From NCBI GenBank assembly GCA_013265495.1, contig MU062233.1:7842554-7906553 (forward strand): a stretch of 64,000 nt of DNA. Reading direction: 5' to 3'. This stretch comes from Vicugna vicugna. Taxonomy: Eukaryota. The notes below the pieces were generated by a model. That model was not told where the DNA came from, did not search any database, and was given only the letters and a program-made list of their open reading frames with translations. Shown here piece after piece: positions 42,814 to 64,000 of this stretch (positions are counted from its first letter, which is position 1; each line of letters opens with the position of its first letter). Both the position numbers and the translations under genes were made by a program.

Positions 42814-45800
42814 TCAGGTTTGGTGCCACAGGGTTTTTGCTTCGGGGCCCAACCTGTTGGGAAAATAGGGAGGTGGAGTGAATTTAGGGCATAGCTGCTC
42901 CAGAATCTTCTAGTACTGGTGCCCTAAGCCTCCCTTGGAAAACCGCACCTGCTCCTACCATTGATGTGGGATGAGGACGCTGGGAGCTGAGAGGCACAAG
43001 TGGCCGTTACATGTGGGATGGATGGGAGATGATTGGGTCTCATGACCCCACTCACTGCATGTGTCTGCCCCGGGCATGTGGCTAGACTCTGAGCAGAATG
43101 AATGGCAGCCCTGATAACCTTAGAAGCCACTGTATCCAGGACAAGGCCTGTTCACGGAACAGCACATCATCTGAATCATAAATCGGAGCCTGTGGTCCTG
43201 CAGGAGCAGGTGGACAGTTACACCAGAGACCACAGCTGTAGCTGCGACCCGTTTTGATGTGAGTGCTCCCTCAGGTACGGGCCCGTGTGTGTGTCTCTGC
43301 GCACATCGGTGTCTGTATGTCTGTTGTGCGTGTGTGCCTCGGTGACATCCACTCCCGGCCTGTCTGGGACAGTAAGGCTCCCTTCCCCCTTGGAGCAGGG
43401 ACCTGGTCCTTGGACTGGGGAAAGCACAGGAGGATGGAGGCAAGGGTGCAAGAGGGGTCTAGCTGTCCTGTCAGCAGTGCCCCATCTTGAAGAGGAAGGA
43501 GTGGAGGAGGCCGAGGAGGGAGGTGTGTGGGGCCCCGGGCAGACTTCCTGGCATGTGCCCTTACCGTGGTCTGGCCTGGGTGGGACAGCCGCTAGGAGCC
43601 TGGTGCACTTTCCTTTACGGGGCCAGCCACCTGCGGGAGCTCCTCGGGCTGCAGGTGGCTGTCAGTGCACACGGGCATCTCCTTCAGTGAGGAGGGCAGG
43701 GGACAGCCATGGAATCTGTGGGGAAAGGGAGCCTCAGGGTCCGGACTCCGTTGCCTCTGCTGAGAGTCGGGGTGGAGGTTGGCCCCACACCGTCCAGCGT
43801 AGGTCTGGGTCCTGGGACCTTGGGCTTAGGAGGGCAGAGTCTGTGCCTGTCGTGGGGGCTCAGGACTCCCACCCACACACCCGGGTGCCCTACCTGAGCG
43901 GAGCGGCCGTGCTGGGGCCCCTTGCAGCAGCTTGCTCAGCCGGGAAGCCCAGGGGTCCGGCTCGAAGTTCTGGGCTCAGACTAGGGGCTGCAGAGCAAAG
44001 AAGAACACAGTCATCCTGGGCTGTATGCTCAGCTGCAGCCTCCCTGCCACGGCCTCAGTGTTCATGTCCTCCTCAACCTCATATGTTGAAATCCTAACCC
44101 CAAGGTGATGGTATTAGGAGGAGAGGCCTTCAGGAGGTGATCTGGTCCTGAGGGTGGAGCCCTTATAAAAGAGACCTCAGAGAGCAGCCTCCCCCCTTCC
44201 ACCCTGCAAGGACACAGCAAGAAGGCGACATCTGCAGCCTGCAGGAGGGCACTTACCAGACACCCAGCCTGCTGGCGCCTTGTCCTTGGACTTCTCAACG
44301 TCCAGAACTGTGAGAAATAAACATCTGTGGTCCTTAACCTACCCAGCCTGTGGTCTACTTGTTGCCTCAGCCCAAACAGACTAAGAGGCACCCAGAGGCA
44401 CACACCAAGCCTCGCCCCCGATGAGGGGTGCAGCCCAGGCGGGGCACACAGGGCAGGCTCCCCCAGTGCACCCGGCCTCCTGGGAGACGGAATGCTGATG
44501 GTCCCGGAAAGGCTTAGCCTGGAGGAGATTCTAAAGAAACTCGGTTCCCTTTGGGATTCTGGAAGGACAGCCTCAGGGAGCTCCCGGGGGAACAGACTGA
44601 CGCATAGAGCCAGCAACCCAGAGGGACTCCTGGGTGGGGCCCCTGAACACTCTCCACTTGGAGCCTGTCAGACCACAATGACAAGGGGCTTTTGGTCTAG
44701 GGGGTGCTGGGGTGCGTTCTGTTTCCCTCCTGGTAGAACTGGGCTTGGCTACTGTCTACAAGATACCCCAAGGGAGGTGCATTCAGAGCTGTTTTAAGAC
44801 TAGAAGGTTAGAAAAGGCCTCAGCCAGACAGAGCAGAGCCTGGGGAAGCCCACAAGGATCCTTGAAGGAAGGTCTCAGGGGAGTCAGGCTCCAAAATGGG
44901 TGAAACAGAACTAGGAGGCAGCCAGGGGGTCGAGCCTGGCCCCACCTCTGCTACTAATTAGCTTTGTGATCTTTAGTTAGTTGCTTACCCCCTCTGAGCC
45001 TTAAATTGAGAAAAGACAAGTCCTGTTTACCTCTCAGACTATAGAAGTACCAGATACGAAACTTCTGAGGATGCGTTAAACACCAGCAGCTTGGGGCCCA
45101 GGGAATCAAAGCCCCCTGCGCCCCCCCAGGCTTCCCCTGGAGCCTACCTGCCATGCTGCTCAGGGCGTGATGCTGGCTTTCAGCCTGCCCTTCAGATGGT
45201 GCTGCAAACAGGGTCTCCATCCCAGACAGCCTGCCACCCAGACAGCCATAGGTCAAAGCCTGCCTCCCAGGCAGAGGACCCTGCCTCCAGCCCCTTCAGC
45301 TGCTCTGGGGAGGCCATGCCAGCTGAGTTAGCATGTCTGGGGGCCAGCATCTCTCTCCTGACTCGGCCCTCACCTTAAGGAGGTGTCTTTTCCATCATAG
45401 TGGTCCCTTGGCCTCTCACACTGGGCTTCTGTGAGGTCAAAGGAGGCTGTGGAAGCCACGTTCTGAGGAGAGATGAGAGGCAGGGGTTACCACGGCCATC
45501 CCTGCTTTCCCCTGTGGGGCCTCTGTCCTGTGCCCGTCCGCCCACTGCCTGGTACCTCTGCCACCGCCCTCTCATCCCAGGACAGGCTCCGGCAGCTGTC
45601 CCCCAAGGCCCCATGGCAGCTGTGCCGGCGGCTCAAGCTGGGCTGTGGAGAGAAGGCGGTGAGGCCACACCAGCCTTGTCAAAGCCTGTGTCTGCAGAGG
45701 CTCCCAGGGCAGGTGCTAGGCTGGACCAAGGAGCCCACGGGGAAGCGGGAGCCAAGGAGCGACTTCCAGGGAACCCAGGAGGAGGAAGGGGGCCCACCCC

Positions 45801-46252
45801 GTCCTGGGTGAGGGCAGAAGCTGTGAAGTGGCCCCAGGGAGCCAGACTGTTGTGGCGGGGAGCGTGTCCACCACAACGCCAGGGCGCCAGGCCCTGTGCC
45901 TTCCGAGGCCTCCAGCGGTCCTGTGGAGGGAGCTGCAGCAGAAGGAATCTCTGGGCACTTACCTTCCTCCCCCGCGGCAGGAGCTGCTACTTAAGCTCCT
46001 CCGAAGATCCCTCCGTGGTGGGGGTACCCTTTGCATCCTTACCCCTACGGCCCCGGCTGCGCGCTCCAGGGAGACAGTGGTGGCCAAGGTTATGTGCGGC
46101 CCAACAGGGATGTCTGGCTGCAGGTCCCTTGTCCCAGCCAGCTGTGCTCCAGGCCACCAGCTTCCTGAGAAACTCTGCTGGAGGGAGGCTGGCCCACTGC
46201 CAACTCTCTCGGGCTGCAGCCCCTTCACCTGTTGCAGCAGCTTCTGGTCCAT
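42814..46252 (-). pseudogene. SPTBN5: Disrupted C-terminal linker / PH-domain segment of SPTBN5 (degenerate exons; stop in ancestral frame)
   Basis: Exon-equivalents: 46118-46252 (no GT after ...RDLQ), 45963-46037 (DAKGTPTTEGSSEELK*QLLPRGRK, TAG at 45987-45989), 45556-45642, 45374-45462, 45148-45230, 43894-43987, 42814-42853 (TGA). They are homologous to the recalled human DAKGTPTMEGSLEFKQHLLPGGRQ...AAPSEEQAESWWRAL region. The type 'pseudogene' refers only to this segment. Confidence 0.7.
44045..44386 (+). mobile_element. MaLR solo LTR (MLT1/MST-like)
   Basis: Diagnostic segments CATATGTTGAAATCCTAACCCCCAAGGTGATGGTATTAGG, CCTTGGACTTCTC..CCAGAACTGTGAGAAATAAA and CAGCCCAAACAGACTAAGA. Confidence 0.8.
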
Positions 46253-46607: not shown

Positions 46608-49600
46608 CTTCCTCTGAAGCTGGGCAAACCTCTCTTCCTGGGCAGCCAGCAGCTTTTCAAAGTCCTGGTGTCTGCAGAGCAGCAACTCCACGTCTGCCAC
46701 TGAGTGCTGGGGAGAAGGCAGCCAGGGTGAGGCCCGGCTCCTGGGGGCACAGAGAGCCTTCCCCTCACCCTCCACAGCCTGGCCCAGGGGTCAGTGAGCA
46801 GAGGAGCCATGGGATCCGCCCTTGGTTGTGGCTGTCAGTGCAGCTGGCTAAGGGGCAGGGCCCCAGCTCACCCCGAAGTTGGGGTCCAGCAGGAGGCCCT
46901 CCCGGGAGGCCAGCCAGGCCTCGGCCTGATCCATCCCCTGCCACAGCTTCCGCAGATGCCAGCTCTCCTCACAGCGTCCCTGGCGCAGGACCCAGGCCTC
47001 CTCGAGCGCCTGCAGCCGCCCTTCCAGCTCCTGCAGACACTGGGTCACCTGGTGGGAGGGCGCCGTGGGTGGGATGCTCAGCCAGAGCGCCCGTTAGGGC
47101 GGGGCTAGAGTGCCCAGGAGAGGTGTCGGGGAAGACCCTGAGGCCTGGACCGTCCTCTTCTCTGCCCTCTCTCCCCACCTCTTTCCTGGCTTTCCCCTTC
47201 TGCTGGGGGTTCTGAAGCCCTGGGTAACTGGGCTCTGTGCCCAGCTCAGCCCCAGACTCATCTCAGTGCTCATACTTCCAAGGACATGAAGTGGCTATTG
47301 TCCACCAGCTGCTGCCCTTCCTGCCGTACATTCTGGGCTTGAAGGCAGTGCTCCTTGATGTCTCGCCCCAGCTCCTCATGCTGCTCCAGGAGCTGCTCAG
47401 CTCTAGTCACATCCCCAGCCAGCTCCTCTGAAGACACCATCACCTGCTTCTCCTGAGCCCATGCTCTGTGGGCAGGGAGTGGAAGCTGCTGTCAGGGCCA
47501 GGAGCCCTGTGGGGTGGGGAGGGGGGTGGAGCAGGGCAGGAGCTGCACAAGGGGCTGAGGACTGTAGCTCCCCAGAGAGCTGGGGTGACCCTGCAGGGGA
47601 GAGCTAAGCCAACAGCCGGGGAGGACCCACTTACAGCAGTTCCCGACAGCGTCCGAGGAAGGCGTGGCCCTGGGCAGCCTGCTCCAGCTGCTGACCCCGC
47701 TCCTGGGCCTTCACATTCAGGCTGGCCCAGGCTTTCTGCACCTCAGCCAGCTGCTTGGCCAGGCCCTCCTGAGCCTCGGGGTGTAGCTGGCCCAGCCGGC
47801 AGGCCTCAGTTGGCACCTGTGCCACCTCCTTCTCCACGGCTGTCAGTTCCCTCTGCCGCCAGAACACATGATCAGGCCTCACCCCCCGGCACCTGATGCC
47901 TGCTCCTCTTCAGGGAGCACCCAGTCCCTCTGGGGAGCTGGTTCTGCTTCCAGACTGCTCCACAACCTGGGAGGCAGGCCCTCCCGTCCCCCCGCCTTCA
48001 GGGAGGGGCTGAGACGGGCAGGCCGTGGCATGTGGATCCTCACCTCCAGGCATCTGTGCTGTTGCTGCAGGGTCTGTACCGACGACAGGCTGTGGCCACA
48101 GGCATCTCCTGCCATCAGGCTGGCCTTCTCCTGCATCCAGCCCCGGAGCTCGGCTGCCACCTGCTCAAAGCCGCGGACCTCCCGGGCTGCAGCCAGGTTC
48201 TGGGAGAGAAGGGAGGGCCTGCTCTGGCCACGGTCCTCTCTTCCTGGAGACATGGCCTCCTGGGCTACCTCCTTTTATTTTTTCCTTATTTTTCAAAATT
48301 GTTTACTTATTTTTAAATTAAAGTATAGTTGGTGTACAATATTATATAGGTTATAGGTGTACAATGTAGTAGTTTACAATTTATAAAGGTTATACTCCAT
48401 TTATACTTATTATAAAATATTGGCTATTTCTCAGTGTTGTGCAGTATATACTTGTAGCTTATTTTGTACCTAATAGTTTGTACCTCTCAGTCCCTCACCC
48501 GTGTCTTGCCCCTCTCCCCTTCCCTCTCCCCCTGGTAACCAACAAGTCCACGGGGATTGGTGACTCTTCCATGAGCACCAGGTGCAGAAAATGTCCTAGA
48601 TGTGGCAGCCACTCAGTGAATGTGTGATGTTGCTGATGACACGTGGTGGGGCCCCAGGGGACATTCTGTGAGGAGAGGGTCTTCAGTGCATACTTATGAG
48701 GAAGGCAGAGGTGGAGACTCGGAAGCAGGCGGGAATGGGTCCATGTGAGGGAGGAAGTTGGTTTGGGGGATCTGGTTGAGGAGAAGAGGGTCTGCTCAGG
48801 AGGCTGCCCAGTCAGGACTCTCAGAGACAGCCTCCCTGGGCTGCAGGCTCTGGCAGGGGCTCAGGGATCTGGGCTGCTTTTCTAGAAACAGCTCTCGCTG
48901 AGAGCTAAGGTGATAGGGGAACACTGAGGATTTCCTTGGCGTACAGATCCACTCAGAGCATGAGGATGAGACCTCACCCAGTGAGCTTGTGTGGTGAAGG
49001 AGACACCAAAGAGGCATGTGTCTTAATGAAACTGAAGCCTGCTTCAGTTTAGCTGGGGGTTTAGAGGGGGTCAGATGTTGGCCAGACATGCTCTTTCTCC
49101 CTGGAGGTGTCAACTGCACAAGGAGGAAACCAAGTTGGTACAAAGACTCAGAGGGGGCTGGAGGTGGAAGATTTTGAGCCTCTTGATCTGCTTGGCACTG
49201 GGAGTTAGAGGCAGACACCTCCCTCCACTCACCCACCCACACCCAAACCCAACTGAACTGGTGGGTCTGCTGTCCCTGGCCCAGACAGAAGGCACAGATG
49301 TCCCCACCCCTCGGCTGCCCCTGGTCTGGTCTGGAGGCACCCACCTGTGTGCGGGCTTTCAGTGCCCTGTCCAGCCTCTCCCAAGTGGCCTCAACGCGGC
49401 TCCGGTGCACTTGAATCTGGGGAGAGCACCTGGGGGCTGCTCGTTCCAAGGAGCCTGCCCGCTCCCGCAAGGCCTGCACCCTGGCCTGCCCCAGGCTCTG
49501 GACTTCCTTTCTGAAAGCATCAAACTTCTGTTCCAGCACCTGCAGGGTGTAGGGCCAGGGAGGGTCACTCTGGAGGTGTGGTATCCTGCAGCTCCCAACG

Positions 49601-52600
49601 CTGACGAAGGGCTTGGCAGAATCGGCCACTTTTGACGTCCTGAGGCTCTGCCTCAAGAACTGCAGGGATCTGCCCAGAGGCCCCCACTTCCCATCTGCTC
49701 CCCCCTCACCCTCCCTCTTTGCCCTTGTGATCCACTGTCCTCCAGGTTCACTCAGGAGTGACTCACCTTGACGGCCTCCAGGTCCTGCCCATAGTCCTGG
49801 GACTCAGCAGAGGCCACTTTGCTGGCCAGCCAGGCGTCCAGGAGCAGGGCTTCCCGCTCCAGTTGGTGGAGCTGCAGCTGCTCCCGCAGGCCTTGCCCCC
49901 TGCACTCCGCTCTCTGCAGCAGCCCCGAGTGGGCCTCCCTCACTGCGCGCATCTGGGCAAGCACCTTAGGGCTGCGGCAGGAAGGACAACCCATTAGAGC
50001 GCTTCCTCTCCAGGCTAGATCAGCCTTCTGCCTCTGTAGGGACGGGAGGGGCCCTGCCTCTCCTCCCTATTTGGTCCTGGCAACGACCCACCTTTCTGAG
50101 TTCGGCCTGCTCTCAAGGAGGGCAGCTCTCTGCTGCAGCCTCTCGATGCGAGGACTGAATGCCTCCAACTCTCTCCTGGTGGTGTCCAGCCTCCGCAGAA
50201 AGGCTTGAGTGGCCTCGGCACTCTGGCCCATCTCCTCCGTGTCCAGGACACAGCCCTGCTCTTCCAGCCAGGATTCTGCCTCCAGGAGCTGGGGTGACAA
50301 AGGGGACAGTTTTCCCTGGGTGATACCCTCCAGGGCTCTCAACTTTGAGTTCATGACCTTGAGATTTAGAGCAGTGAGTGGTTCTCAGCCTGGCTGACTG
50401 GGATCACCTGAGAGCCTCAACAACTCCCTATGCCTGGCTCTCCCCCCATAAGATTCTGATCTGGTCTGGAAGGGAGCCTGGGTAGCAATCAGCATTTCTC
50501 CAGGGTTCCAGGTAATTCTCACGTAAAGCATTGACTAAGAATCACTGGTTTAGAAGAAACAGCAAAGCAAAACCAACCCAAATCCGGGGGGCTGTTTTCT
50601 GGGAAACAAGCTGAAGGAAACGACTCAGTGGGGGTGACAGAAAACACACAGAGAGCCTGGAGCCCCAGCCGGGGGTTACCCTCCAGGCCTGCCTACACCT
50701 TGGGTGTTCTCCTGCCCGGCCCCACCTCACCCCTCACCTCTGTCAGGAACTGCTGGGCCTCCTGAGCCTCCTGCAGCCTCCGCCGCCTCTGTGCAGCCTC
50801 TGCCCGCAGGCGGCCCACGGCATCCTCCAGCTGCTGCACCCGGGCAGCCACGTCGCGGGCGGCAAAGTGCCCAGCCTGCACCAGCTTGCGCCCTGTGCCC
50901 AGCACCGCCTGGGTCAGAGCCTCGTGGCTGCTCATCTCACTCTCCAGGTTCTGCAGAGACAGGACCGGGGATGCTCCTGGGTGCTCCTCAGGGGACCCAG
51001 AGCTGTGTTTGAAACCTCGTGGGATCCCACAGACGCCCCCAAAGAGAACCTTGTCCTTGTGACCAGCAAAGAATCTAAGGCCCCAAAAGCCTTTTGGAGG
51101 CAGGAAGCTCCCAGCACCAGTGGTGGATGGAGGATGGCCCCACCCTTCCTAACGGGCCCACACCTGGTGCTTCTCCTGCAGGTGCCGCACGGTGCTCAGG
51201 CTCTGGCCGCAGTCTCGTGAGGCAGCCAGGGGCAGCTTCTCCCGCACCCAGGCCAGCTCCTCATCAGCGTCCCTGAAGAACTGCAGGAGGAGGCTCCGGG
51301 CCTCCAGGGCTGTCCTGCGCTCCCGCAGGGGCTCCCTCAGGCCCTCGAACCTGCAGCAGTGGAGGGCGGGACCAGGGTGGGGGACCCTGGTCGTCACTAT
51401 GATGGCCAGACTCTGACCCACCCTGTGCCCCTCATCATGGGCTGGCTGGGGGAGGCCCTGGGGAGATGAGTGAGGGGCAGGGAGGAGGGATGGATCTACC
51501 TCTGAAGCAGCCGCTGGAACTGCTCTTCCAAGTCTTGGGTGAGGCTGGGGCTTTCCCGCACAAAGGCCTGGGCCTGGCCCAGCAGGGCCTGTGCCCGACC
51601 AACCTGCCTGTCCACTGCTGCCTCCAGCTCTCCCTGTGCCCCTAGGAGCTCGTCCAGCCCAGGCTGGTCCAGGCCCCCGATGGGGGCCCTCAGCTTGACC
51701 TCCACGGGCTCCAGCCAGCTCTCCAGTTCCTCCACACTCCGCCGCAGACGCTGGGCCTGAGGCAGAATGTGAGGTGGGGGCATGCAGGGGAGAGGCCTAG
51801 AGCTGCATCTAGCCTGCTCTGTAGCCCACAACCTCACCTCACAGGTCTCCTGTAGCTTGACTGCCTTCCTCTGGCAGTTGGCCTGCAGCTCCTCCCAAAG
51901 CTTTCTCAGCTCCTGCAGGTGCTCCTGGATGGTCTCTGAGGCCGGGTGGCCTTCCTGCAGCAGCCTCTGCCCCTCCTATAGTCACAACATGGCACACACC
52001 TCATGGAGTCAGGACTGCTGGTATCAGGGCCCTTGTGTTGGCTCCAACTATCAGCCCCATGGCTGCAGTCTGTGTGCTAGCTGTGTGATTCTCAGGCAAG
52101 TTCCTTAACCTCTCTGAGCTCATTTTTCTTAGCCACATAATGGAGACAATAGTGGTTATTTTGTTTAAACGAGAGAAAACATTTCAAATACTTATATTAG
52201 ACTGAGGGGGCCTGGAGTCAGGGCCTACCCTTTGTAGGTGGAAGAGGGTAAATAAAAAAGGTGCTGTACTTTGACTCCTGCACCCACAGGACTTCTGGCT
52301 GGGCCCTGACTCTCCTCTGATGTCTTTCCAAGAGAGTTTTCAAAACCATCACATCAAAACACTATCTTTGAAATTCTTGAAAAGGCACCATTTTTGGAGA
52401 GGGTACCCCAGGGAAGCCTCTGTGACTCACTACCCTTTGGTGCTTAGTACAGCGTCTGTATACAGAAAGCATTCACTGAGACTTCGCCATCCACTGAGAC
52501 TTCGCCATCCACTGCTGTGGTTCAGAGCCAGTTGCCAGGGCTCTGTGGGGTTGCCCTGCTCTGGCCAGTAAGCCTGGCCCGGGCCCCCAGGGCCTCACCG

Positions 52601-55600
52601 TCTGCAGCCTTTGTTGGTGGTGTACACCCGCATCCAGCTCGGCCTGGAGATTCTGCTGCTTCCGCCACTGTGCCTGCAGCCCGGCTGGGTCCCGCCAGCC
52701 CTCTTCCAGGGCCACCAGGTTCTTCTCCCTCAGCCATGTGGCCACCTGGGCACACAGGGAGGACCAGGCTCTGCTGCCTAGGGTGCTTGTCCACCTCACC
52801 TCTGGGCTGCCCCGGGGAAGGGTGGCTTTTTCCTGGGGCAACTCCTTCCCCACCAAGCACAACCACTCCCCACTCCAACCAAGGAGAACCTCGTAGAAAT
52901 CCTGCAGGAAAGCCTGCAGCTGCCTGAGCTCCTCCAGCTGGCGGTGACGGGTCCTGGCTCGCTCCAGGAGTGCCTCTTTCCTGCCGGAAGGAGGGTGTCA
53001 GGGGCCTCAGGTCTTTTCACTGGGACCTGGAGCTGCTACGGGGATGAGTGTGCACACATACACACATGCGTGCACATGCGTGCCCTTCCAGCCCTTCTTG
53101 TGGATCAATATACCCTGAGTCTGGGCTTTCCTTTGTTTCTTTAATTTTTTTTTTTTAGGTGGGGGGAGGTAATTGGGTTTACTTATTTCGAGGAGTTACT
53201 GGGGGTTGAACCCAGGACCTCACGCAAGACCATGCATGCTAAGCATACGCTCTACCGCTTGATCTATACCCCACCCCTGGGCTTTCCTTTGAAATAGAGA
53301 CACACCCTACTTCCCCTCTTCATTAGTGCCTGTTATGGGCTGAATTGTGTCCCCGCAGATTCTTAGGTTGAAGTCCGAATCCTCAGTATGTCAGAATGTG
53401 ACTGTTTTTGAAGATAAGGTCTTTAAAGAAGTAATTAAGTTAAAATGAGGTCATTAGGTTGGGCCCTAATCTGATACAAAGGGTGTCCTTATAAGAAGGG
53501 ATAAGCACACAGGCACACACACACAGGGACAGACCGTGTGAAGGCAAGGAGTGAGGCCTCAGGAGAAACCAGCGCTGCTGACATCTTGATCTTGGGATTT
53601 CTAGCCTCCAGAATTATGAGAAATAAACTTCTCTTGTTTAAGCCACCCAGTCTGCGATATTTTGTTATGGCAGCCCTAGCAAACTAATTCAGTGTCTACA
53701 TCACTTTTTTGATCAGACACTGCTATTAGTGCGACTTCGTTGGGATGTATTTGTAAGTGTGCGTGTGTGTATATTTGTACTGATTTATATATGTGTGTAC
53801 TTCTGTACAAATATAGTAAGTCCATTGCCATATGCGCAAAAATAGACATCAGAAGTGAGATCTATTAAAGAGGAAAAGAAGTTCTAACACCCCTCACCCT
53901 CACCCCACCAGGGTGCACACACACCTCCCACCAGTGTAGCCCCGACGCTGGCGTTAGTGGGAATGCTTGTGTCCTCCTGCTGGGGCTGCCAAAGGGGGCT
54001 GGGGGCAGGGGAGATGCAGAGTCTTGATGGAATGAAAATGGCTTCAGAGGATGCCAGGAGCCTGAGAGGGAGGGGGTAGGGTGGCACTGTCCTGGGGGGC
54101 AGCCAGGTCTGCCAGGAACTACCTAAGGGGACTAGGGGGAGGGAGTGTTGACAGAGACCAGCACACCAACGTTTGCCATCTGTCAGTCAAAGACCTCAGG
54201 TAGCCAGGTGGGGTCCACCTGCAGGGAAGAGGAGGGGGTGGCCTCCAGGGCTCCAGCACAGGAGCCACAAGCATTGTGGGCCTTGGTGGGCTCTCTGGGA
54301 AGGAGGGAGACCCCTGCCAATCTGAGATCTGGCTTTTGGCCAAATATGCCTTGGTCTGAGGGGCTGGACGGGGCAGCTGAACCAGATGGGATTTTACGAG
54401 GGAAAAAGGCAGAGCTCATAGCTACGCCAGCTTCAGTTACATGAGCATAAGAAATCTGCCAAGTGACTGTCAGGCACTGCGTCAGGACATCAAGGGTCCC
54501 TTTCCCATCCTCACCACAACCCTAAGAGGCAGGTACTGTTACCCCCTCATGGTAGACATGAGACTCCATGAGAAATTTGCCACAAGTCCCACCATGGGTG
54601 GGCAGCACAGAAACTCAGCTGTCTAACGACTGTGCTCTGGTATCGCCATCCCATGAGGTCATCTCTCTCTCAGTTTCTCACTATATGCTGCTCTGTAAAA
54701 GTCCCTTTTATCTTAGCTGGGTGACCATGTGCTGTGTGACTCAGCAGGCTGACACACTGCAGGGCCAGGAGTGGTGGGGTCCTGGCATCCAACCTCAGCA
54801 CCCGGAAAATGCTGGGAGCCCAGGCTAACAGGCAGAAGAGCCGGGCAAGAGCCAGACATTCGTGCCAGCCCACCCACCACCCCTTAGCCCCAGAGCCGCT
54901 GTACCTCAGGAGCATGGCCTGGCACCGGCCCAGGGCGCCCTGGGCCTCGGGCTGTCCACCCTGGAGCAGGCTGCGGGTGGCGGCCTCCAGCGCGCTGATC
55001 TTGTCGGCCCGTGCCTCCAGCTCCCGTTCGTGCATCTTGTGCTTCCACAGCAGGGTCTCCACGTTGGCCGGGGAGTCCTGGGGATTGATGCTGTCCACAG
55101 GGCTGCCCCTCCTCCTCCCAAGCTATCTGCTTTCCCACCTAAACCATCTGATCAAACACATCCCCCGAATCCCTCCAGGCCGTATCTGGCTTTAGGGCAG
55201 TGATTCTCAACCAAGCATGGGTCAAGAGTCAGAATTTCCAGAGCAGGTGGAGCTTCTCCACATAACAGGGACACCCCCTCCTCTGCACTCCCAGTAAGGC
55301 TATGTCAGCACAGGGCGAGTCAGCCCTGATTATTCTCTGAGCGCCCTCATGGGTCAGGCCCTCCTGCCACAGAGCTTGGGACGGTGGTGGGAAAAACAAA
55401 CATCTGGGTGTAAGGAAGTAAGAAGGGCAGAGGTGAGAAGCATGTTGGGAAGGAGGCAAGAATGTGTCCAGGGCCACACACTCACCCTCCAAGCTCCCAC
55501 GGCACCTCCTGGTGCACAACCGTCACCAGTGATGGATGGGTAAGCAACTGCTTGTGGTTGAGGGCTGGGAGATGCCCTTGGCCTGGGAGCTCAGGCAGCA

Positions 55601-58600
55601 CTGTCTGCCTTGATCTCTAATGCTGCTCTTGCAAACCCTCCCTCACTCTTGCTGGGCACCTACCCCTAGACCCTCACTGGCTGGGCAGTCTTCCTGGCTG
55701 CAGAGCCAATGTTCCATCTGCTCCACAGAGCTCAGAACTAGCTGTTGAAAAAGAAAAGGAAAAAGGCAAGAGGAAGTGAGCAGAGGGTTCAGGGAGAGTG
55801 AGCCTGTTGGGGTTCCCAGTGGGGAAACCAGGCTGCTGGGGCCTGGCTTAACAGAACGAGCCCACAGCAGGAAGACTTGCAGCGCACGAGCTGAGTGGTG
55901 CGTGGTAGGTGGTGGGAAAAGCCCCTGGTACAGCAGTCTCTCTGGCTTTGGCTTTGACCAGGGGCAGTGGGTTTAGCATAGGCCTCACGGGTGGAGTTGG
56001 GATGAAGGCTGCCTACCTGCAGCTCCAAAGCCTGCTGCAGCTGGAGCTGGTGCTCCTGCCAGGCCCGTTCCAGGCTGTTCAGCTCCTGGTCTAAACCAGC
56101 CAGGGCCTGGCGGATGTCGGGGGTGGCTGGGTGCCCGGTGGCAAGCAGTTGCTGCCCGGTGCTTCGGGCCAGGCTGATGCTGTCTGTTCGGGAGTCCAGC
56201 TCGGCCTGTAAGAGGACTGGGCTCAGATCCCAGAGGCTGAGGCTCCCTGAGTGGGAGGGAAGAGGCCCAGTGGGAAGGAGGAGAGGTGGGGAAGACAGCT
56301 GAGGGGGTTAGGGTGGAAGAGGTGAAAGGCAGAGGCAGCTGATACAGAAAGAACCCAAGAGAAAATTGGGATCACAGCAAAGGGGAGGCCAGGGAGGACG
56401 TGAGATCCCAAGAAAGGCCCCGGGGCCTGGGCTGTTCACCTTGCACTCCTGCTGTTCCTGCAGCATGTGCTGGACCTCCGCAAGGCTGCGTGGGGTGCTT
56501 CGGGCATCCATGTCAGCTCGCAGCCTCTGGGCCCAGACCAGCAATTCCTGCAGCATTGCCTGCAGCTTCTGAGCTTGGTGCAAGGCATCCAGCGAGTCCT
56601 TCCTGTCCACCAGGGTCATTAGCTAGTCCCAGGGCCTCCGAGCCCCTCTTTCCCCCTGTGCCCACAGGTGCCTTCTCTCCCTGAATCCCTTCAGCCAAAG
56701 AAAGGGCCCATGGGCTGGGAATTAATATGGTGACAATACAGATGGTTATTGGAAGGACAGAGGAAGACTCTTAGGGGCAGTCTGGGGACTGGGCTGCTGC
56801 AGGGGACGGGTCCACGAGGGCAGTGAGGGAAAGAGGCCCCAGGGCTTGTACCGCTTCTGGGCCCTGCTCCGGAGCTGCCACCAGCTGTCCATCATCTCCT
56901 GCTGCTTGAGGCTGAGGCTGTGGGCTGCCCCAGGGCTTCTCTGGCAGAGACGGCCCACCTCACGCTCTAGGGGCTGTGTGGGAAGCTAGGGTCAGGGGCT
57001 GGGGCAGGGAGGCAGGTTGTGCTCAGGGGAGCCCCAGCTGCAGGAGGCCCCAGCCTGTGGTGTGCAGCTGAGTGGATCTGGCTGGCTCTTGAGGTCCTGA
57101 CCCCCACCCTGCCGCCACATGCCTGCCCAGGGTCCCACAGCGGAGGTCCCCTGGGCCCGGGCCCACCTCCGCACCCAGCTGCACACCTCCACTTGTTCCT
57201 GGATGAGGCCCATTTCCTGCTCCACCTGCTTGTGTTTCCACATCAGCCTCTGCACACCATCCAGATGTTTCCCGTAGTCCAGGGTCTGGACCAGGGTGGC
57301 CTGGAGAGGAATGGGGTGTTACCAGTGGCCTTTGCTTCAGCTCCTCCCTCATGGCAGATGGGTCACTGGCAACAGGGTTTCTGTGTGGGAAGCAAGCGCC
57401 CAGCCTGATTCCCTTCTCAGTGTCCTCCGTGGGCTGGAGCAGGACGCTGACCCTGACCAGAGGGCCCTTCCTTTTGTGAAGGGGGAAGATTCCCAGGAGG
57501 GACTTGAGCTGGAGTTAGTACCCTCCACCGGTGGTGCCTCCACATGCATTGTCTCACTTGCTCTCGTTCCTCTGCGAGGACTGTGCACGGACTGGCCTGG
57601 CTGAGGCAGGAACCAGAGGGGCGGTAGGAACAGCTGGCAAGAGCCCTTGCGTGCCCAGAACAGGGCACCACCTGCTTCCTGGGGGGCTTCTCAGGCTGCA
57701 GACCACTCTTCCACTCCGGCCTCTGCCAGCACCTAGGCCATGTTTCTCTGTGGCTGCTGACACAATCCCCGGGCAAACCTCCTGTGGGTTCTGGCCTTGC
57801 TCAGGGACAACAGAGGAAACAGTATGTGGTGGGGGGTCCTCTGGCCTCCGGACACAGTGCTTCTGAGGGAGAAAGGAGCCAGGTGGGCCAGCCTCCGAGC
57901 ATGCAATGGGGGCTTCTAGGTCCAGAGTTGACCCCGAGAGCTCCTGGAAGACCCCCTGATGGCCCCCTGGCGGGACGTGCCTCCCAGTACCCAGCTGAAG
58001 AGGAGAGGCGGATGAGGGGAGAGATGCAGAGACTCAGGCGGCACTGGCTCCCGGGCTGAACCGGCTTTTCCATCGCTTACCTTCTCCCTAATCAGCTCAG
58101 TGATGTCACCTAGCTTTTGGGACAATGCATGTATCTCCAGAGCTCCTTCAAGCTGCTGCTGGTACCGGAGCAGGTTGCCATGGAAACTGTTCCACCTGGC
58201 AGAGAGGGTGTAAGGCTGAGTCTGAGGTGGCCCTCCAGCCCGTCTCCAGCCCCGTCTCCAGCCCCTCTGCTTCCGGCTCAGAGACTGGCCTGCTGTTGAG
58301 CTGGTGTCGCCGCTGGCAGATGGTCTTGACTTGCTCGGGGTCCCGGTTCTTGAGCTGTAGTGACAAGTCGTTGATAATCCTGATGCGGGCGTCATCCACC
58401 GTGTCCTGTGGGGGGTGCAGGGTGAGGGCATTGGCAGCACCCACTCTGAGACCCTTCTCTGCACTGCAGTCAGCACTTGGAGGGTTTGCTTGGTCCCAGA
58501 AGAGCATGAGGAATAACATGTCTGGGGAGTGGAGGCAGCTGCTGCTTCAGCTGTGGACAGCCCACCCCATGCCGGGTGCAGTGAGGAAGATCCACTTGGG

Positions 58601-61600
58601 GATTGTAGCCCCAGGGCTGTCTCTAAGGCTGGAAAAAATGCTCCCCAGGTCAGGACCAGGCAGGAGGGAGAAGGCAGGCATGCACAGAGGAACAGAAGCT
58701 TTCAAAGTTGTAATGAAGCTTCTCAGGATAAGAAAAGCAAAGAATGTGTAGAAGGAAATGGTGAGTGCCAGCCCCCTGGGGTTTGGGTGTCCCCACCCCT
58801 GGGAGTCACCGGGCCTCGGCTGCCACTGCTTAGACACTGGGTGGGGCTCCTGGGTACATGGGGAGGGGGTCTGTGGCACTGGGTGGGATGGCAGGCATCC
58901 TTCCGCTGTAAAAGCATCTTGCATTGGTCTGCGTTTTCACAGCACTTCCCAATAGGTGTCTCAGACGGGGTGGGCAGGGAAGGGGGTTGCTCTCTCTTAC
59001 AGAAGCCAGAGCAGAGCTCAGAGGCTAACATGGTGAACTTATGGCACAGGCAGGACTCAAGCCCAGCTCCTCAAGTGTATCTAATGCTCTTCTTACTACG
59101 GCATCTGGCACAGTGGCTGCGAAATTCCACCATTAGCAAAGGCTATCTTAGATCAGAGCATTGCAGCTTTTAAAAAGTCATACATACTTACCTCAGGGGG
59201 TGAAGTTGGCGTGTTTAGGCTCTAACATTTGATTCTGAAACATTTACCCAATTTCTTTCCTCTATACCTTATAAGGAAAATAGATTTTTGGATTGTGTGT
59301 CTGGGGTAGGGGGGTGAGCAGGTGCTGAGGTGCTGAACGAGCAGCTGCAGTTTTTTGATTGTCCACTACGCCCAGACGTGTGTGTTCCTTATTTTAAAAT
59401 TTTGAAATAATTGCAGATGCACATGAAATTGCAAAAGTAGTACAGAGAAGTCCCATGTCGCCTTCACCCAGCTACCCACGATGGTTAACATCCTATGTAA
59501 CTGCAGTACAATATGAAAACCAGGACACTGACTTCAGTACAAATGTTAACTAAACTACAGACTTCATTCAGACTTCATCAGTTTCTACATGCACACATCT
59601 GTGTGTGTGGGTGGCATAGTTCTAGGCAGTTTTATTATATATACAGATTCGTGTAACCACCACCATCACACATACAGGCTCCCTTACCTATGAGGTAAGC
59701 AGTAGCCCCATTTTAAAGATGAAGAAACTGAGGCTCAGAGAGGTGAGGGCACCTGCCTAAGCATGTGCAGGTTGTAAGCGCAAAGCCAACACGAGAGTTC
59801 ACATCTGGCCCCAAAGCCCGTGCTCAGTCACTGCTCTGAGCTGCATTTCCCAATGCGGGGATGCACTGGCCTACCTCTCCCCAGCGGGGCCCCCTTACCC
59901 CGGCCCAGACTCCTGGCAACTTGTGGAGCTGCCTGCGGAGCTGCAGGCAGTGCTCAAGGTCCTGGCCCAGGTCGCCGATGTCCACCGTCACCTCCTGTGG
60001 AGGCCAAGTGTCTGGAAGGCTGCACTCTGAGCATCCGGGCCCAGGTGCACCCAGCCCTCAGGCACCCAGCTGCTGGGGCAGTGTAGGGGCAGGTGGAGGC
60101 TTTGGGAACTTCTTGCTGGGGCTCCCTCCTATCAGGCAGGGAGCTGCAGGCCTGGGGCTCCCTCCCCAACCTGTCAGCCCCACAGCCCCACCCTGGCTCT
60201 GTCCTTGTTCAGCTGGGTCTCACCATCTCCTGGATCCAGGCCTCTGCACCATCTACTCTCTGCAGGAATTCCAAGAAGTTCCGCTTGTCCTCTAGGTCCC
60301 GGCCCCGGAGAGCCACCGTCTGTCTCAGCTTCTCCCAGTGCTCCTGCAACTCCCGCAGCTTCTGGGAGACCTCTCCCGCCCAAGGGTGGCTTTGTGCTAG
60401 GAGAGCCTCGCCCTCCTGGGAAGAGAGGGGACACTAAGAGATCTTGCCTGTCACCCTTTCTCTTGCTTGCTTTTTCTCCCTCACAGGCTCCCAGGCCCCN
60501 NNNNNNNNNNNNNNNNNNNNNNNNNNNNNNNNNNNNNNNNNNNNNNNNNNNNNNNNNNNNNNNNNNNNCCGCCTCAGACCTTTCCCTTTGGCCTTCCTAG
60601 AGTCTTCCCTCTGGGGCAGGGTGGGGCTAAGGGCCTGGCTGTTACCTTGGCAACAGAGGTTATGACCTCTTCATGGGCCTGGACCTCAGCCTCAAAGGCC
60701 TGGTGTTTCGGCAGGTGCCTCAAGTTATCTTTCAAGTCCCCAGGAGGGACTGGCTCTTTTAGCCACTGGATTCGCTCCTGGATCCAGTCCTCAGCCTGGC
60801 AGGGGTGGGGACATGAATCTCATGATGCTGATGCTGCCTCAGTTCAGAGACATCCCCCACGCCTGCCCTCAGCCATGCCCAGGTAGCTGACTGCTGGGCT
60901 GGGCAGTGTCCGGTAAATGAGATTCAATGGTTTGAGCCCAGGAAGACACCCCCAGGCCCAGCTGGTCCCCCAGCCACAGGAAAGGGCTGAGCAGGGACCT
61001 TGGGTGGGATCTCATTTTGGAGGTACAGCTTGTCTGTCCTAGGTTCCTAGACTGCTCTGCTCCCCCTCAGCACCTATGTTCTGGCTCTTCAAGAGCTTAG
61101 GAAGCAGAGGGGTCTCCACACACAGGGTCTTCAAATCAAATGTTCTGGGCTCCAGTATGGCCTCTGGGAAAGTCATTTAACTCTCCAAACTTCAGTGTCC
61201 TTATCACAGGGCTGTGGTGAGGCCTGAATGAGCCCTTGAAGGTGAACATCATTTGCAAACTGTAAAATGTGCCCAGGTGGAAGGCACTGGGCTGGGGTGG
61301 CCGTCTGACCTGGGTGGTGGCCCTGGTGAAGGCAGCCATCAGCAGGGAGGTGTGCAGGGTGTGTCCCCGGATCTCCGCCAGCTTCTTCACCATAGCCCGG
61401 TGCTCCAGCACTGTGTGGAGCATGTCCTGCGTCCTGGGGCCCCCGAGCATCTTTGCCTGCTCACACAGAGCTGCCTCCTGTGGGCAGGGTGGTGGGACGG
61501 GGGACACAGCCCACTGTTTACCATATAGGGGAGGCTGGAGCAGGGGCTGGCCCTGAGGAAAGCCCTGCCCTCAGCCCTGCGTGACCTAGGGCTGCCCAGT

Positions 61601-64000
61601 CCTCCCAGCACTACCCGCCAGCTCCCCAGTGACCATGTGATATGCAACCAACTGGCCTCTGTGTCCCTGCAGTGTGATTCACCCCATCCCAGGCCCTCCT
61701 CTTGTACCACACGCCCAACTCTGCACAGTCAGCCCCAACCAGGCTCCCCTAGCCCCACAGGCCACCCCCAGACATAAGCTTTACCTGTGGGTTCACACCA
61801 AGCACCCTGCATACCCCATTCAGAACTCTCCAAATTTCCCAGACTCCCACCACCCACCTCTGACCACATGCAGGACTCCCCGGACCCATTACCTTCTCAT
61901 CCTGGGCCATCAGCACCTTCTGGAAGGTCTTATGCTTGCTGATCAACTTCTCCACCTCTTCCACTGAGCTCCCCAGGGCACTGGTTTTCAGGATGACCTG
62001 GATCAACCCACAGAAAAGTCAAAGGGGCCATCAGGGACTATCCAGACAACCAGCCCCCCTCCCCATTTGCAGCCGTCTGGGCTGAGGCAGTGAACAGCCC
62101 CTGGGCTCTGAATCAGGGAAAAAACCAGAAGCCCCAGGAAGCAAGAGAGCGAGTGAGGGGGAGGGGAGAGAGGGAGGAGAGGGCCCTCTAGGAGGCAGGT
62201 ATGCCTATTCCAGGATGAGGGCACCTGCCTCCCAGGCTGTGAGGATCTGGTCCAGGTGGCCGCACTTTCTGAGGAAGAGCTGCTCCTGGTGCACGGCCTG
62301 CAGCCTCTCTTGCTTTTGCTCCCAGGCCTGGAACACCTGCTCTCGCTTGTCCCTCAGGGCTCGCAGCCCTTCCTGGACCTGGGGATGGGCAGTGGGGGAA
62401 GCCTGCGCTCAGGAGAGCCACGTGGACCAGACAGAAGTGGATGCTGAGGGAAGCCTCTGAGGAGAGGCTGGTGTGGCACAGCGGGGCAGGGTGTGAGCAC
62501 AGTTGTCAGGCGCAGGCTTGGCCAGGATAGGCTGAGGGGGCACTAGACAAGGGGGCCCACCTCCTTGCCGGATGTCCCGGCAGCCAGAAGCGCCTGCTGG
62601 CCCAGCTGGGCGGCGCGCTGGTACAGCTCCTCCTGGGCCTCCAGCTCTGCCCGAAGCTGGTGGTGGGTGCTGAGCTTTAGCAGGCTGCTGCTGGGCTCCT
62701 GGGAGCTCTCCTCCACCTGCAGCTCCTGCCACATGCTGGTCACCCAAGAGGTGTAGTCCTGCACCTGGATCCCAGGGAGACAGAGGGAGAGAGTGGGGTG
62801 CAGGCTGGGATGGGCTGGGTGGCAGAGAACAAGGCTCTGAGGCACCACGACAGCCCACGTGGATCCACGCACGTACTGGAGTGGCCCCAAGGCGTCCCAG
62901 GTCAGAGCCACAGGTGAGGGCCCTGGGTCACCTGGTTCCCTTGCTGCCATCCAACTCAGTGCTCCCAGGTCCACTAAACTTCCACAGGTGCCAAGACCAG
63001 CCTCCTCCTCACCCACACCGAGACTTCTCTCCATTCTTTACTTTCACTGCCTTTCTTGCTTAGAAGTTCTTCTCCTGCCTTCCATCCCTTCCAAGTGCAC
63101 ACATTCATCTAGGGCCGAGGCCTTCTTTGCCTCATGAAGCCTTCCCTGGCCCCGACTTGACTTGTCCTCTGAATCTCCAGTTCAACACTCACAAGTGGCC
63201 TTCTACCGATTTGTGTGCAAACGCATGCTAGAGCTGGAAGAGCCTCGAAGCCTTGTCCAAAATCATTGCACAGATGAAGAAGGGTAAATGGCACAACATG
63301 TGTGCGAGAGTTTTGAAACCTCCAAGCGCTCACACACAGTGGATAACAAGCTAGGGGTAAGTGCCTTGCTCGAGCCCACGCTGCTAGGAAGTGGCAGAGC
63401 TAGGTCTCTAAATGCAAGCCTTTCTGCAGTGTCACACTTTGGGCCTTGCAGTCTACCAGGCACTGGGACATGGGGACTCCTGGGAGAGCCCAGGGCCAGG
63501 CCTGCTGTCCGCATCTGACTCTCTGGGGTGTTGGGCTTATCTCCCAGCGAGACAGGCTCCCTGATGGCAGTTGTCCCATCTTTCATAGGCTCCATGTCAT
63601 CCTTCTCTCCCCACCCACAGCTCCTAGCAGAGAGCCTAACACAGAGGTTAAAAAGATGCCTGATCCAGAGGTCACTGTCTAGGACATTTGGGTCTCCAGT
63701 TACGGGCTTTCCTGGGCTGTTTTTCTCCCAAACTTTGGCTGGGACCCCTGTCTCCTGACTGTGCTGTCACTTACCTGGCCAGGCGGTGACCTAGACCTAA
63801 GGAGTCACTGCTGGGACCCATGCTCAGCCCTCTGACCAGCCAGATGGACATCGCACGTGTCTACACTCGTCTTCCATCTGGAGCTGGAGGGCCTCATTAT
63901 TGCTTGCACACTCATGGTGCAACACAGACATGCACGCACACATACACACATGCTGCCCTGGGGAATGATGGCTCACCGCTGTGTGGAAGCGGGCCAGGAG
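46608..64000 (-). CDS. SPTBN5: SPTBN5 (spectrin beta V) spectrin-repeat rod, 5'-partial, 30 exons, frame-intact
   Basis: Minus-strand exons (plus coordinates): 63977-64000 (partial), 62561-62764, 62229-62378 (GC donor), 61893-61997, 61310-61477, 60646-60795, 60224-60415, 59899-59994, 58290-58405 (GC donor), 58081-58195, 57187-57300, 56852-56973, 56440-56602, 56017-56205, 55664-55741, 54905-55077, 52890-52980, 52599-52745, 51838-51975, 51500-51756, 51164-51350, 50738-50950, 50092-50288, 49767-49971, 49345-49539, 48044-48199, 47635-47852, 47276-47465, 46872-47048, 46608-46706. Total 4629 nt with no stop or frameshift. Spectrin-repeat peptides (e.g. FFRDADEELAWVREKLPLAASRDCGQSLSTVRHLQEKHQ) match recalled human SPTBN5. 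Confidence 0.93.
48275..48545 (-). mobile_element. L1 3' end fragment
   Basis: T-rich start, then AAGTATAGTTGGTGTACAATATTATATAGGTT...CCCCTCTCCCCTTCCCTCTCCCC.TGGTAACCA. Confidence 0.75.
50378..50548. mobile_element. MER5-family hAT MITE
   Basis: AGTGGTTCTCAGCCTGGCTG...GATTCTGATCTGGTCTGG...AAGAATCACTGG. Confidence 0.6.
52020..52200 (+). mobile_element. MIR
   Basis: CTGTGTGATTCTCAGGCAAGTTCCTTAACCTCTCTGAGCTCATTTTTC...ATAATGGAGACAATAG. Confidence 0.65.
52474..52514. repeat. 18-bp tandem duplication (CACTGAGACTTCGCCATC)x2 plus partial copy
   Basis: Two identical adjacent copies are directly visible. Confidence 0.9.
53136..53276 (-). mobile_element. tRNA-derived SINE, camelid Vic-1-like, with 15-bp TSD
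   Basis: Minus strand reads GGGGTGGGGTATAGATCAAGCGGTAGAGCGTATGCTTAGCATGC...GGTCCTGGGTTCAACCCCCAG...poly(A). A box (TAGATCAAGCGG) and B box (GGTTCAACCC) are present. TSD CTGGGCTTTCCTTTG at 53121-53135 and 53277-53291. Family name is from recall. Confidence 0.85.
53331..53691 (+). mobile_element. MaLR solo LTR (MLT1-like)
   Basis: Starts TGTTATGGGCTGAATTGTGTCCCC and ends CCCTAGCAAACTAATTCA. Internal AATAAA. Near-perfect 5-bp TSD (GTGCC / GTGTC). Confidence 0.85.
58233..58268. repeat. Short imperfect 11-12 bp tandem repeat (CTCCAGCCC[C]GT)x3
   Basis: Visible in the SPTBN5 intron next to the GC donor at 58288-58289. Confidence 0.75.
59390..59680 (-). mobile_element. Ancient L1 (L1MB/MC-type) 3' fragment
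   Basis: TTTTGAAATAATTGCAGATGCACATGAAATTGCAAAAGTAGTACAGAGAAGTCCCATG..CCTTCACCCAG. Confidence 0.7.
59680..59840 (-). mobile_element. MIR
   Basis: CCCCATTTTAAAGATGAAGAAACTGAGGCTCAGAGAGGTGAGGGCACCTGCCTAAG. Confidence 0.75.
60500..60568. other. Assembly gap (69 N), intronic in SPTBN5
   Basis: Run of N. The flanking exons join in phase 0 (..VAK|EGEALL..), so no exon appears to be missing. Confidence 0.9.

Follow-up and report, generated by a model that had tools for sequence, protein, structure and literature searches.

The TAG codon at positions 45989-45987 of the window (the whole 64,000-nt stretch of Vicugna vicugna DNA that was analyzed) lies in the first PH-domain exon of SPTBN5, which encodes beta-V spectrin. 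In the reading that we consider probable as a whole, this exon is already dead in camelids, it is skipped through the old 5′ splice site of the exon before it, the protein made has no working PH domain, and the rest of the gene is alive. What the locus appears to record is an old loss of the membrane-binding end of the protein rather than a freshly broken gene, and it would represent a lineage-specific loss of an exon and a domain of a known kind.

The window contains the 3′ half of SPTBN5, on the minus strand. Minus-strand stop-free stretches from ~62800 down to 43600 encode spectrin repeats; one of these, used as a search query, returned full-length beta-V spectrins, and a follow-up search returned at least 105 SPTBN5 orthologues. 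Among 141 proteins, the best fit to the window was SPTBN5 of Camelus ferus, and the DNA identity between window positions 43000-64000 and the C. ferus locus was 96.5-96.8%. A cPLA2-family gene, which is the neighbor expected at the SPTBN5 locus, lies downstream of SPTBN5 in camel, cattle, dog, and deer. Runs of N occur at window positions 12358-12553 and 60500-60568, the latter within the SPTBN5 intron at 60645-60416, so that no exon is touched. Among the matches listed (at least 105 orthologues), hippo, pigs, ruminants, and camel were present and no cetacean SPTBN5 was; this may be a real absence or an effect of the listing. Human SPTBN5 has 68 exons, and its product is described as having CH domains, repeats, and a PH domain (PMC9248767). 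According to one review (PMC7886071, citing Cortese et al., 2017), it is by a PH domain specific for phosphoinositides that beta-V spectrin is attached to the hair-cell membrane, in the outer hair cells of the cochlea.

Translation of the minus strand from 46037 to 45963 yields DAKGTPTTEGSSEELK, the stop, and then QLLPRGRK, followed by gtaagt; coordinates, frame, and the TAG itself were exactly as given in the original prediction. The exon aligns with residues 1-16 of the beta-spectrin PH domain (1BTN), which bears out its description as the first PH-domain exon. In the ancestral frame of this exon, the codon orthologous to the TAG is CAG in six of six outgroups, i.e., in hippo, Bos, Cervus, Diceros, Canis, and Panthera DNA, and about 30 SPTBN5 proteins have Gln at the orthologous position, in a motif that reads LELKQQLL or EFKQHLL. 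The proposed CAG>TAG change at this Gln was thus correct.

The preceding exon, exon N (46043-46252, minus strand, 210 nt), encodes the linker after the last repeat and ends ...TTVSLERAAGAVG; its acceptor, CCCCAAG/ATG, is kept in the outgroups (a slash marks splice boundaries throughout). In all six outgroups the next exon is a 72-nt, phase 0-0 exon with its own preceding intron of 170-215 nt, the intron having the donor GGG/GTAAGG (GTGAGG in hippo) and the acceptor TTTTCAG/GATGCA. Its camelid counterpart is a 75-nt, phase 0-0 relic (45963-46037, minus strand) that once encoded strand β1 and the start of the β1-β2 loop. In three of three camelid assemblies, all that is left between ...GCC GTA GGG and GAT GCA AAG is GTAAG (46038-46042, minus strand), which alignments with the six outgroups and the two Camelus assemblies identify as a 5-nt stub of the former 170-215-nt intron. 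The interior of the intron, with its branch site and pyrimidine tract, has been deleted in camelids, and no usable 3′ splice site is left. A further camelid-specific change in the relic is a 3-nt insertion (GSSEELK versus GFLELK); C. ferus and Camelus bactrianus share the insertion, the stub, and the TAG with the window in identical form, and the relic as a whole differs from that of Camelus at 3 of 75 nt. Another description of this junction, a 19-nt deletion within an exon relative to the fox protein (a full-length orthologue), was ruled out, as outgroup DNA has an intron there.

The relic is fused to exon N with five extra bases, i.e., a +5 frameshift. The upstream frame runs through it as VRMQRVPPPRRDLRRSLSSSSCRGG with no stop, and because the 5-nt stub shifts the frame the TAG is out of frame in this read-through, being read as ..TTA AGT AGC... 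The read-through translation continues as ...AAGAVGVRMQRV... to a TGA at 45635-45633 (minus strand), three codons into the next exon and 77 nt upstream of the N+2/N+3 junction, which is the first stop in the shifted frame for a transcript that retains the relic. Reading of the TAG would require the ancestral acceptor, which camelids have deleted, and the claim that it triggers nonsense-mediated decay (NMD) or truncates the protein is therefore unsupported. The broader outcome foreseen, i.e., loss of PH function from the protein, perhaps with a share of transcripts prone to NMD, is still plausible; only the route to it through the TAG falls away. The features of the exon are those of symmetrical-exon loss: it is functional in outgroups, a splice signal has been destroyed, its length is a multiple of 3, and its flanks join in frame. 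As far as the sequence allows transcripts to be predicted, the TAG would be the operative stop of none of them, and it is a secondary scar in an exon that had already been lost or that was lost together with the TAG.

The ancestral 5′ splice site of exon N, GGG/GTAAGG (46037-46045, minus strand; cleavage at 46043/46042), is present and unaltered. In Bos, Cervus, Canis, and Panthera, loci and models alike have an identical 9-mer as their donor, and the view that the site arose as a new donor in camelids was rejected on that ground. Joined to the acceptor CTCTCCACAG/CCC at 45642, it takes out both the stub and the 75-nt relic, with the frame kept and the junction translated as ...AAGAVG/PSLSRRHSC... 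Both Camelus RefSeq models, XP_032336758 (C. ferus) and XP_074222690 (C. bactrianus), use this skip junction, with the caveat that gene models are built to keep an open frame. With the same junction, the coding sequence in the window (62764 to 43619) comes to 5421 nt without a stop, and all of its exon lengths equal those of C. ferus. When transcript-derived sequence was sought with short peptides spanning the skip junction, the single match was to an unrelated genomic ORF from another species. The relic has a 5′ splice site of its own, AAG/GTAAGT (45957-45965, minus strand; cleavage at 45963/45962), which is a perfect consensus. With a donor position weight matrix (PWM) built from 33 other donors of SPTBN5, the exon N donor scored 7.73 (rank 24 of 36, and within the working range) and the relic donor 11.55, the top score of the gene in the window. 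As the relic donor is the stronger, site strength favors retention of the relic, and by this measure an mRNA including the relic, with its premature stop, could be the major product. It is likely that both productive skipping and unproductive retention occur at this locus.

The exons downstream of the relic bear on how much of the C terminus is still in use. The second PH exon (N+2, 45556-45642, minus strand) is open in the ancestral frame with its acceptor, CTCTCCACAG, intact, and has Arg at the position equivalent to Trp23. The third (N+3, 45374-45462, minus strand) has lost 3 nt in camelids, and with them the Phe of the conserved HTFSLR strand, and in the fourth (N+4, 45148-45230, minus strand) the otherwise invariant Trp of the C-terminal helix has been replaced. 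The helix codon (45175-45173) is CAG (Gln) in the window and CGG (Arg) in Camelus; elsewhere it is TGG in Diceros, Bos, Cervus, and Panthera, CGG in dog, and AGG in hippo, the Trp having been replaced independently. Three C-terminal tail exons (44307-44257, 43987-43894, and 43715-43619, minus strand) follow, open in the skip frame; in these, the window and Camelus differ by 7 synonymous and 2 non-synonymous changes. At the end of the last tail exon (window 43619-43595), camelids have GGCCCC/GTAAAG, where other species have GCAGAG and the coding sequence continues. In the camel models, splicing from that GT leads to a far-off last exon of 50 nt (window 42853-42804); unspliced, the tail frame ends 9 codons later (...VKESAPGS, then a stop). 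Given the GTAAAG, the camelid C terminus is unlike the long tail of other Laurasiatheria.

All six exons downstream of the relic (three PH and three tail) are open, with intact splice sites and with lengths identical in the two camelid tribes. In the ancestral frame they show 14 synonymous versus 8 non-synonymous differences (pN/pS 0.19, binomial P 1e-4), whereas the other two frames give pN/pS values of 1.5 and 0.9 and contain stops. This synonymous excess rests on 22 differences, of which nine are CpG transitions. The synonymous rate in the C-terminal exons, ~0.12, is four times that of introns (0.027) and four times the synonymous rate of the rod (0.03), and CpG transitions account for just part of this raised divergence. 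Five of the 8 non-synonymous differences between the window and Camelus fall within 45174-45153, eight codons of the former helix. The neutral probability that the 501-nt frame would have stayed open since the split is ~0.25. On the camelid stem, the PH remnant accumulated 2 synonymous and 12 non-synonymous changes, with a pN of 0.109 versus 0.035 in the rod, i.e., about threefold higher. Our reading of these patterns is that PH function disappeared on the camelid stem and that the frame leading to the tail probably remains in use.

For the Camelus product, whose junctions are those of the window, there was no Pfam PH match at E<=10. With a gathering score for PF00169 of 25.1 bits, the Pfam PH scores of other SPTBN5 proteins were 46.8 (rhino), 45.8 (bird), 41.7 (squirrel), 37.3 (gibbon), and 29.4 bits (lion). 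The raw stop-free pieces around the TAG also gave no Pfam match, because single PH exons are too short. Strand β1 is missing from any product, the relic being skipped, out of frame, or stopped one codon past the Lys8-equivalent. Under either splice outcome, camelid beta-V spectrin is predicted to have no working PH domain.

An unlikely alternative, yet one to be taken seriously, is that inclusion of the relic is the main outcome, in which case a 290-nt fused exon would lead to the TGA at 45635-45633 and either to NMD or to a rod-only protein without PH remnant and tail. A stop farther than 50-55 nt upstream of the last exon junction makes a transcript a candidate for NMD. The TGA, 77 nt before the next junction and with at least four junctions after it, lies beyond that distance and, on paper, is in frame in the relic-retaining isoform. 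Besides this placement of the stop, the alternative draws on the relic donor outscoring every other donor in the gene, on the neutral-like rate of the PH remnant on the camelid stem, and on the weakness of the open downstream frame as evidence (P ~0.25). It does not account for the frame-specific synonymous excess in the downstream exons between the two tribes, nor for the skip junction in both RefSeq models, and the strongly maintained rod requires a productive mRNA. We therefore prefer skipping of the relic as the source of the productive mRNA.

The original prediction had the exon spliced in as in primates, with the TAG in frame and transcripts either degraded or truncated before the PH domain. 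The TAG does stand in the ancestral frame at a conserved Gln, and by way of later junctions it too lies beyond the 50-55-nt distance. However, the intron that would have to precede the exon is 5 nt long and has neither acceptor, branch site, nor pyrimidine tract; the coding frame of exon N is displaced by +5 within the relic, so that the TAG is no codon there and, in contrast to the TGA of the relic-retaining isoform, is not in frame for NMD; and the position of the primate-type upstream donor reads CAG/CCAGAC, without a GT. Inclusion of this type is very improbable.

That the rest of the gene is alive is indicated by its rod. We aligned dog, hippo, Bos, and camel proteins to the window as guides, using a purpose-written program for spliced protein-to-genome alignment in which frameshifts, stops, and introns of any phase are permitted, and the same 30 exon boundaries, from 62764 to 46043, were recovered with the guides. 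Upstream of exon N these comprise 29 consecutive spectrin-repeat exons (46608-62764, minus strand), all of them open, with conserved GT/GC-AG boundaries, the exon lengths of C. ferus, and neither a stop nor a frameshift. In the ~20 kb of the gene in the window there are two lesions only, the frameshift at the stub and the TAG. With all four guides, GC-AG introns were placed at window 62228 (GAG/GCAGGT) and 58289 (CAG/GCCAGT); these may be genuine GC donors, or the donors may lie a few bases away. Both Camelus models have an extra 81-nt exon (ALSPHLTLQES...) at 46508-46428, between the last repeat and exon N, and in the window this exon is flanked by good GT-AG sites. Dog, hippo, and Bos proteins are without it and have a single intron at 46601-46253; the extra exon could be a cassette specific to camelids or an artefact of the modelling.

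In the rod, the window differs from C. ferus by 33.5 synonymous and 62.5 non-synonymous changes (pN/pS 0.57, P 0.005), and on the camelid stem, by parsimony with four outgroup lineages, 62 synonymous and 94 non-synonymous changes (pN/pS 0.46, P 3e-6). With a neutral expectation taken from the intron substitution rate of 0.027 and an indel rate of 0.0024 per nt, a neutral 4629-nt rod would have acquired ~6 stops and 10 frameshifts since the tribes split, and none was observed (P ~1e-7). These figures indicate that the rod is under purifying selection. Because its pN/pS is below neutral and the expected ~6 stops and 10 frameshifts are absent, SPTBN5 is no pseudogene, at least as concerns the half that lies in the window. 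A unitary pseudogene has lesions spread along the gene and evolves neutrally, and the half in the window shows neither. That camelid SPTBN5 as a whole is such a pseudogene, with the TAG one of many lesions, is very improbable. It could appeal to the C. ferus annotation, which has SPTBN5 in two pieces, a 596-aa N-terminal product and a 3249-aa remainder. However, the split is probably a quirk of annotation or assembly, since the C. bactrianus RefSeq model (XP_074222690) is a single, full-length protein of 3823 aa with CH domains and without a low-quality flag; and splice sites as well as open frames have been kept across 29 rod exons in two tribes, with a significant synonymous excess at pN/pS values of 0.46-0.57 and a neutral probability of ~1e-7.

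The camelid comparison, i.e., Camelus and one Lamini-like genome (the window), served also as the check on an erroneous call at the TAG: the codon is identical in the C. ferus and C. bactrianus assemblies, so that three assemblies from two camelid tribes share it, and it is therefore neither a base-call error nor a private variant and, as judged from these genomes, is old and fixed in camelids. Given the identical state in three assemblies from two tribes that are 3.3% diverged, it is almost certain that the TAG reflects neither a fault of assembly or sequencing nor a polymorphism private to one animal, explanations for which nothing speaks beyond general possibility.

The comparisons show that the interior of a ~200-nt intron before a 72-nt symmetrical exon was deleted before the camel/llama split, leaving only GTAAG, and that the CAG>TAG change and the 3-nt insertion are further lesions of the same dead exon. 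In the splicing that we propose, the productive mRNA would join the donor at 46043/46042 to the acceptor at 45642, with the relic removed in frame and the TAG intronic, and its product would have a full-length rod, a PH remnant without strand β1 and the Lys8-equivalent, and the C-terminal tail. Transcripts using the relic donor at 45963/45962 would contain the relic out of frame, stop at the TGA at 45635-45633, and be NMD candidates, and the locus probably yields a mixture of the two.

If this is right, the TAG is a fossil in a lost exon and should not be scored as a gene knockout, a call that screens counting in-frame stops would make wrongly for SPTBN5. It would also illustrate one mechanism of exon death, in which a deletion of the intron interior spares the old donor, which now skips the exon in frame. 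Camelids, together with ruminants, hippo, and dogs, where the lesions are others, would offer natural tests of the need of beta-V spectrin for a PH domain, which would bear on the anchoring of the protein in hair cells and photoreceptors. Otherwise, this is an ordinary lineage-specific change in a fast-evolving gene, and it would carry more weight if recurrent loss of the PH domain proved to be functionally meaningful.

The SPTBN5 proteins of primates, rhinoceros, squirrels, and birds are orthologous and have CH domains, 30 repeats, and a C-terminal PH domain. The camelid gene is like them in its cPLA2 neighbor, in its exon-intron structure over 30 exons, and in the order of the four PH and the tail exons. 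In primates, rhino, squirrels, and birds, PH exon 1 has its own intron and the Gln, and the proteins score 37-47 bits with Pfam PH, whereas in camelids PH exon 1 is fused, frameshifted, and stopped, and there is no PH match. Compared with a textbook NMD stop, the camelid TAG is likewise upstream of several junctions but differs in lying outside any translated frame that is allowed.

The PH domain of mouse beta-spectrin (PDB 1BTN/1MPH) offers a structural reference, with which the rhino beta-V C terminus can be aligned in full (E 4e-13). In 1BTN the counterpart of the relic exon is residues 1-16, with strand β1 (MEGFLNRKHEWEAHNK), a segment that camelids cannot translate. For Trp23 and the helix Trp of 1BTN, the camelid equivalents are Arg and Gln/Arg, respectively. 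In the inositol-phosphate complex of 1BTN, we take the ligand contacts to be Lys8, Arg21, Ser22, Trp23, Tyr69, and Lys71.

In ruminants and hippo, as in camelids, the SPTBN5 rod is intact and the PH region is eroded, without a Pfam PH match; they differ in that PH exon 2 is dead and PH exon 1 is intact, with CAG. In Bos javanicus and Cervus canadensis, the orthologues of the exon at 45642-45556 have in common a deletion of 4 nt and the loss of the acceptor (AG>GG in Bos); the 3′ end of the exon is missing in Bos and the 5′ half in Cervus. The hippo exon has kept an open frame, with its donor changed from GT to GA, and the Bos, Cervus, and hippo gene models all skip the 87-nt exon. These lesions of PH exon 2 arose independently of the camelid one. 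With Pfam PH there was no match for the hippo, Bos, and dog models. Because of these missing matches, the exon 2 lesions of ruminants and hippo, and the loss of the helix Trp in dog and hippo, PH erosion appears to be recurrent in Laurasiatheria. We suggest tentatively, as a possibility that we would not yet call probable, that beta-V spectrin has had its PH domain dismantled more than once in Laurasiatheria, each time independently, with selection on the 30-repeat rod persisting. On this view the loss hit PH exon 1 in camelids and, in separate events, PH exon 2 in ruminants and hippo, and the Trp of the C-terminal helix was replaced in canids, hippo, and camelids. Camelids would then be animals with a naturally PH-less beta-V spectrin, in which attachment to the membrane by way of the PH domain would be dispensable or would have passed to another part of the protein or to a partner.
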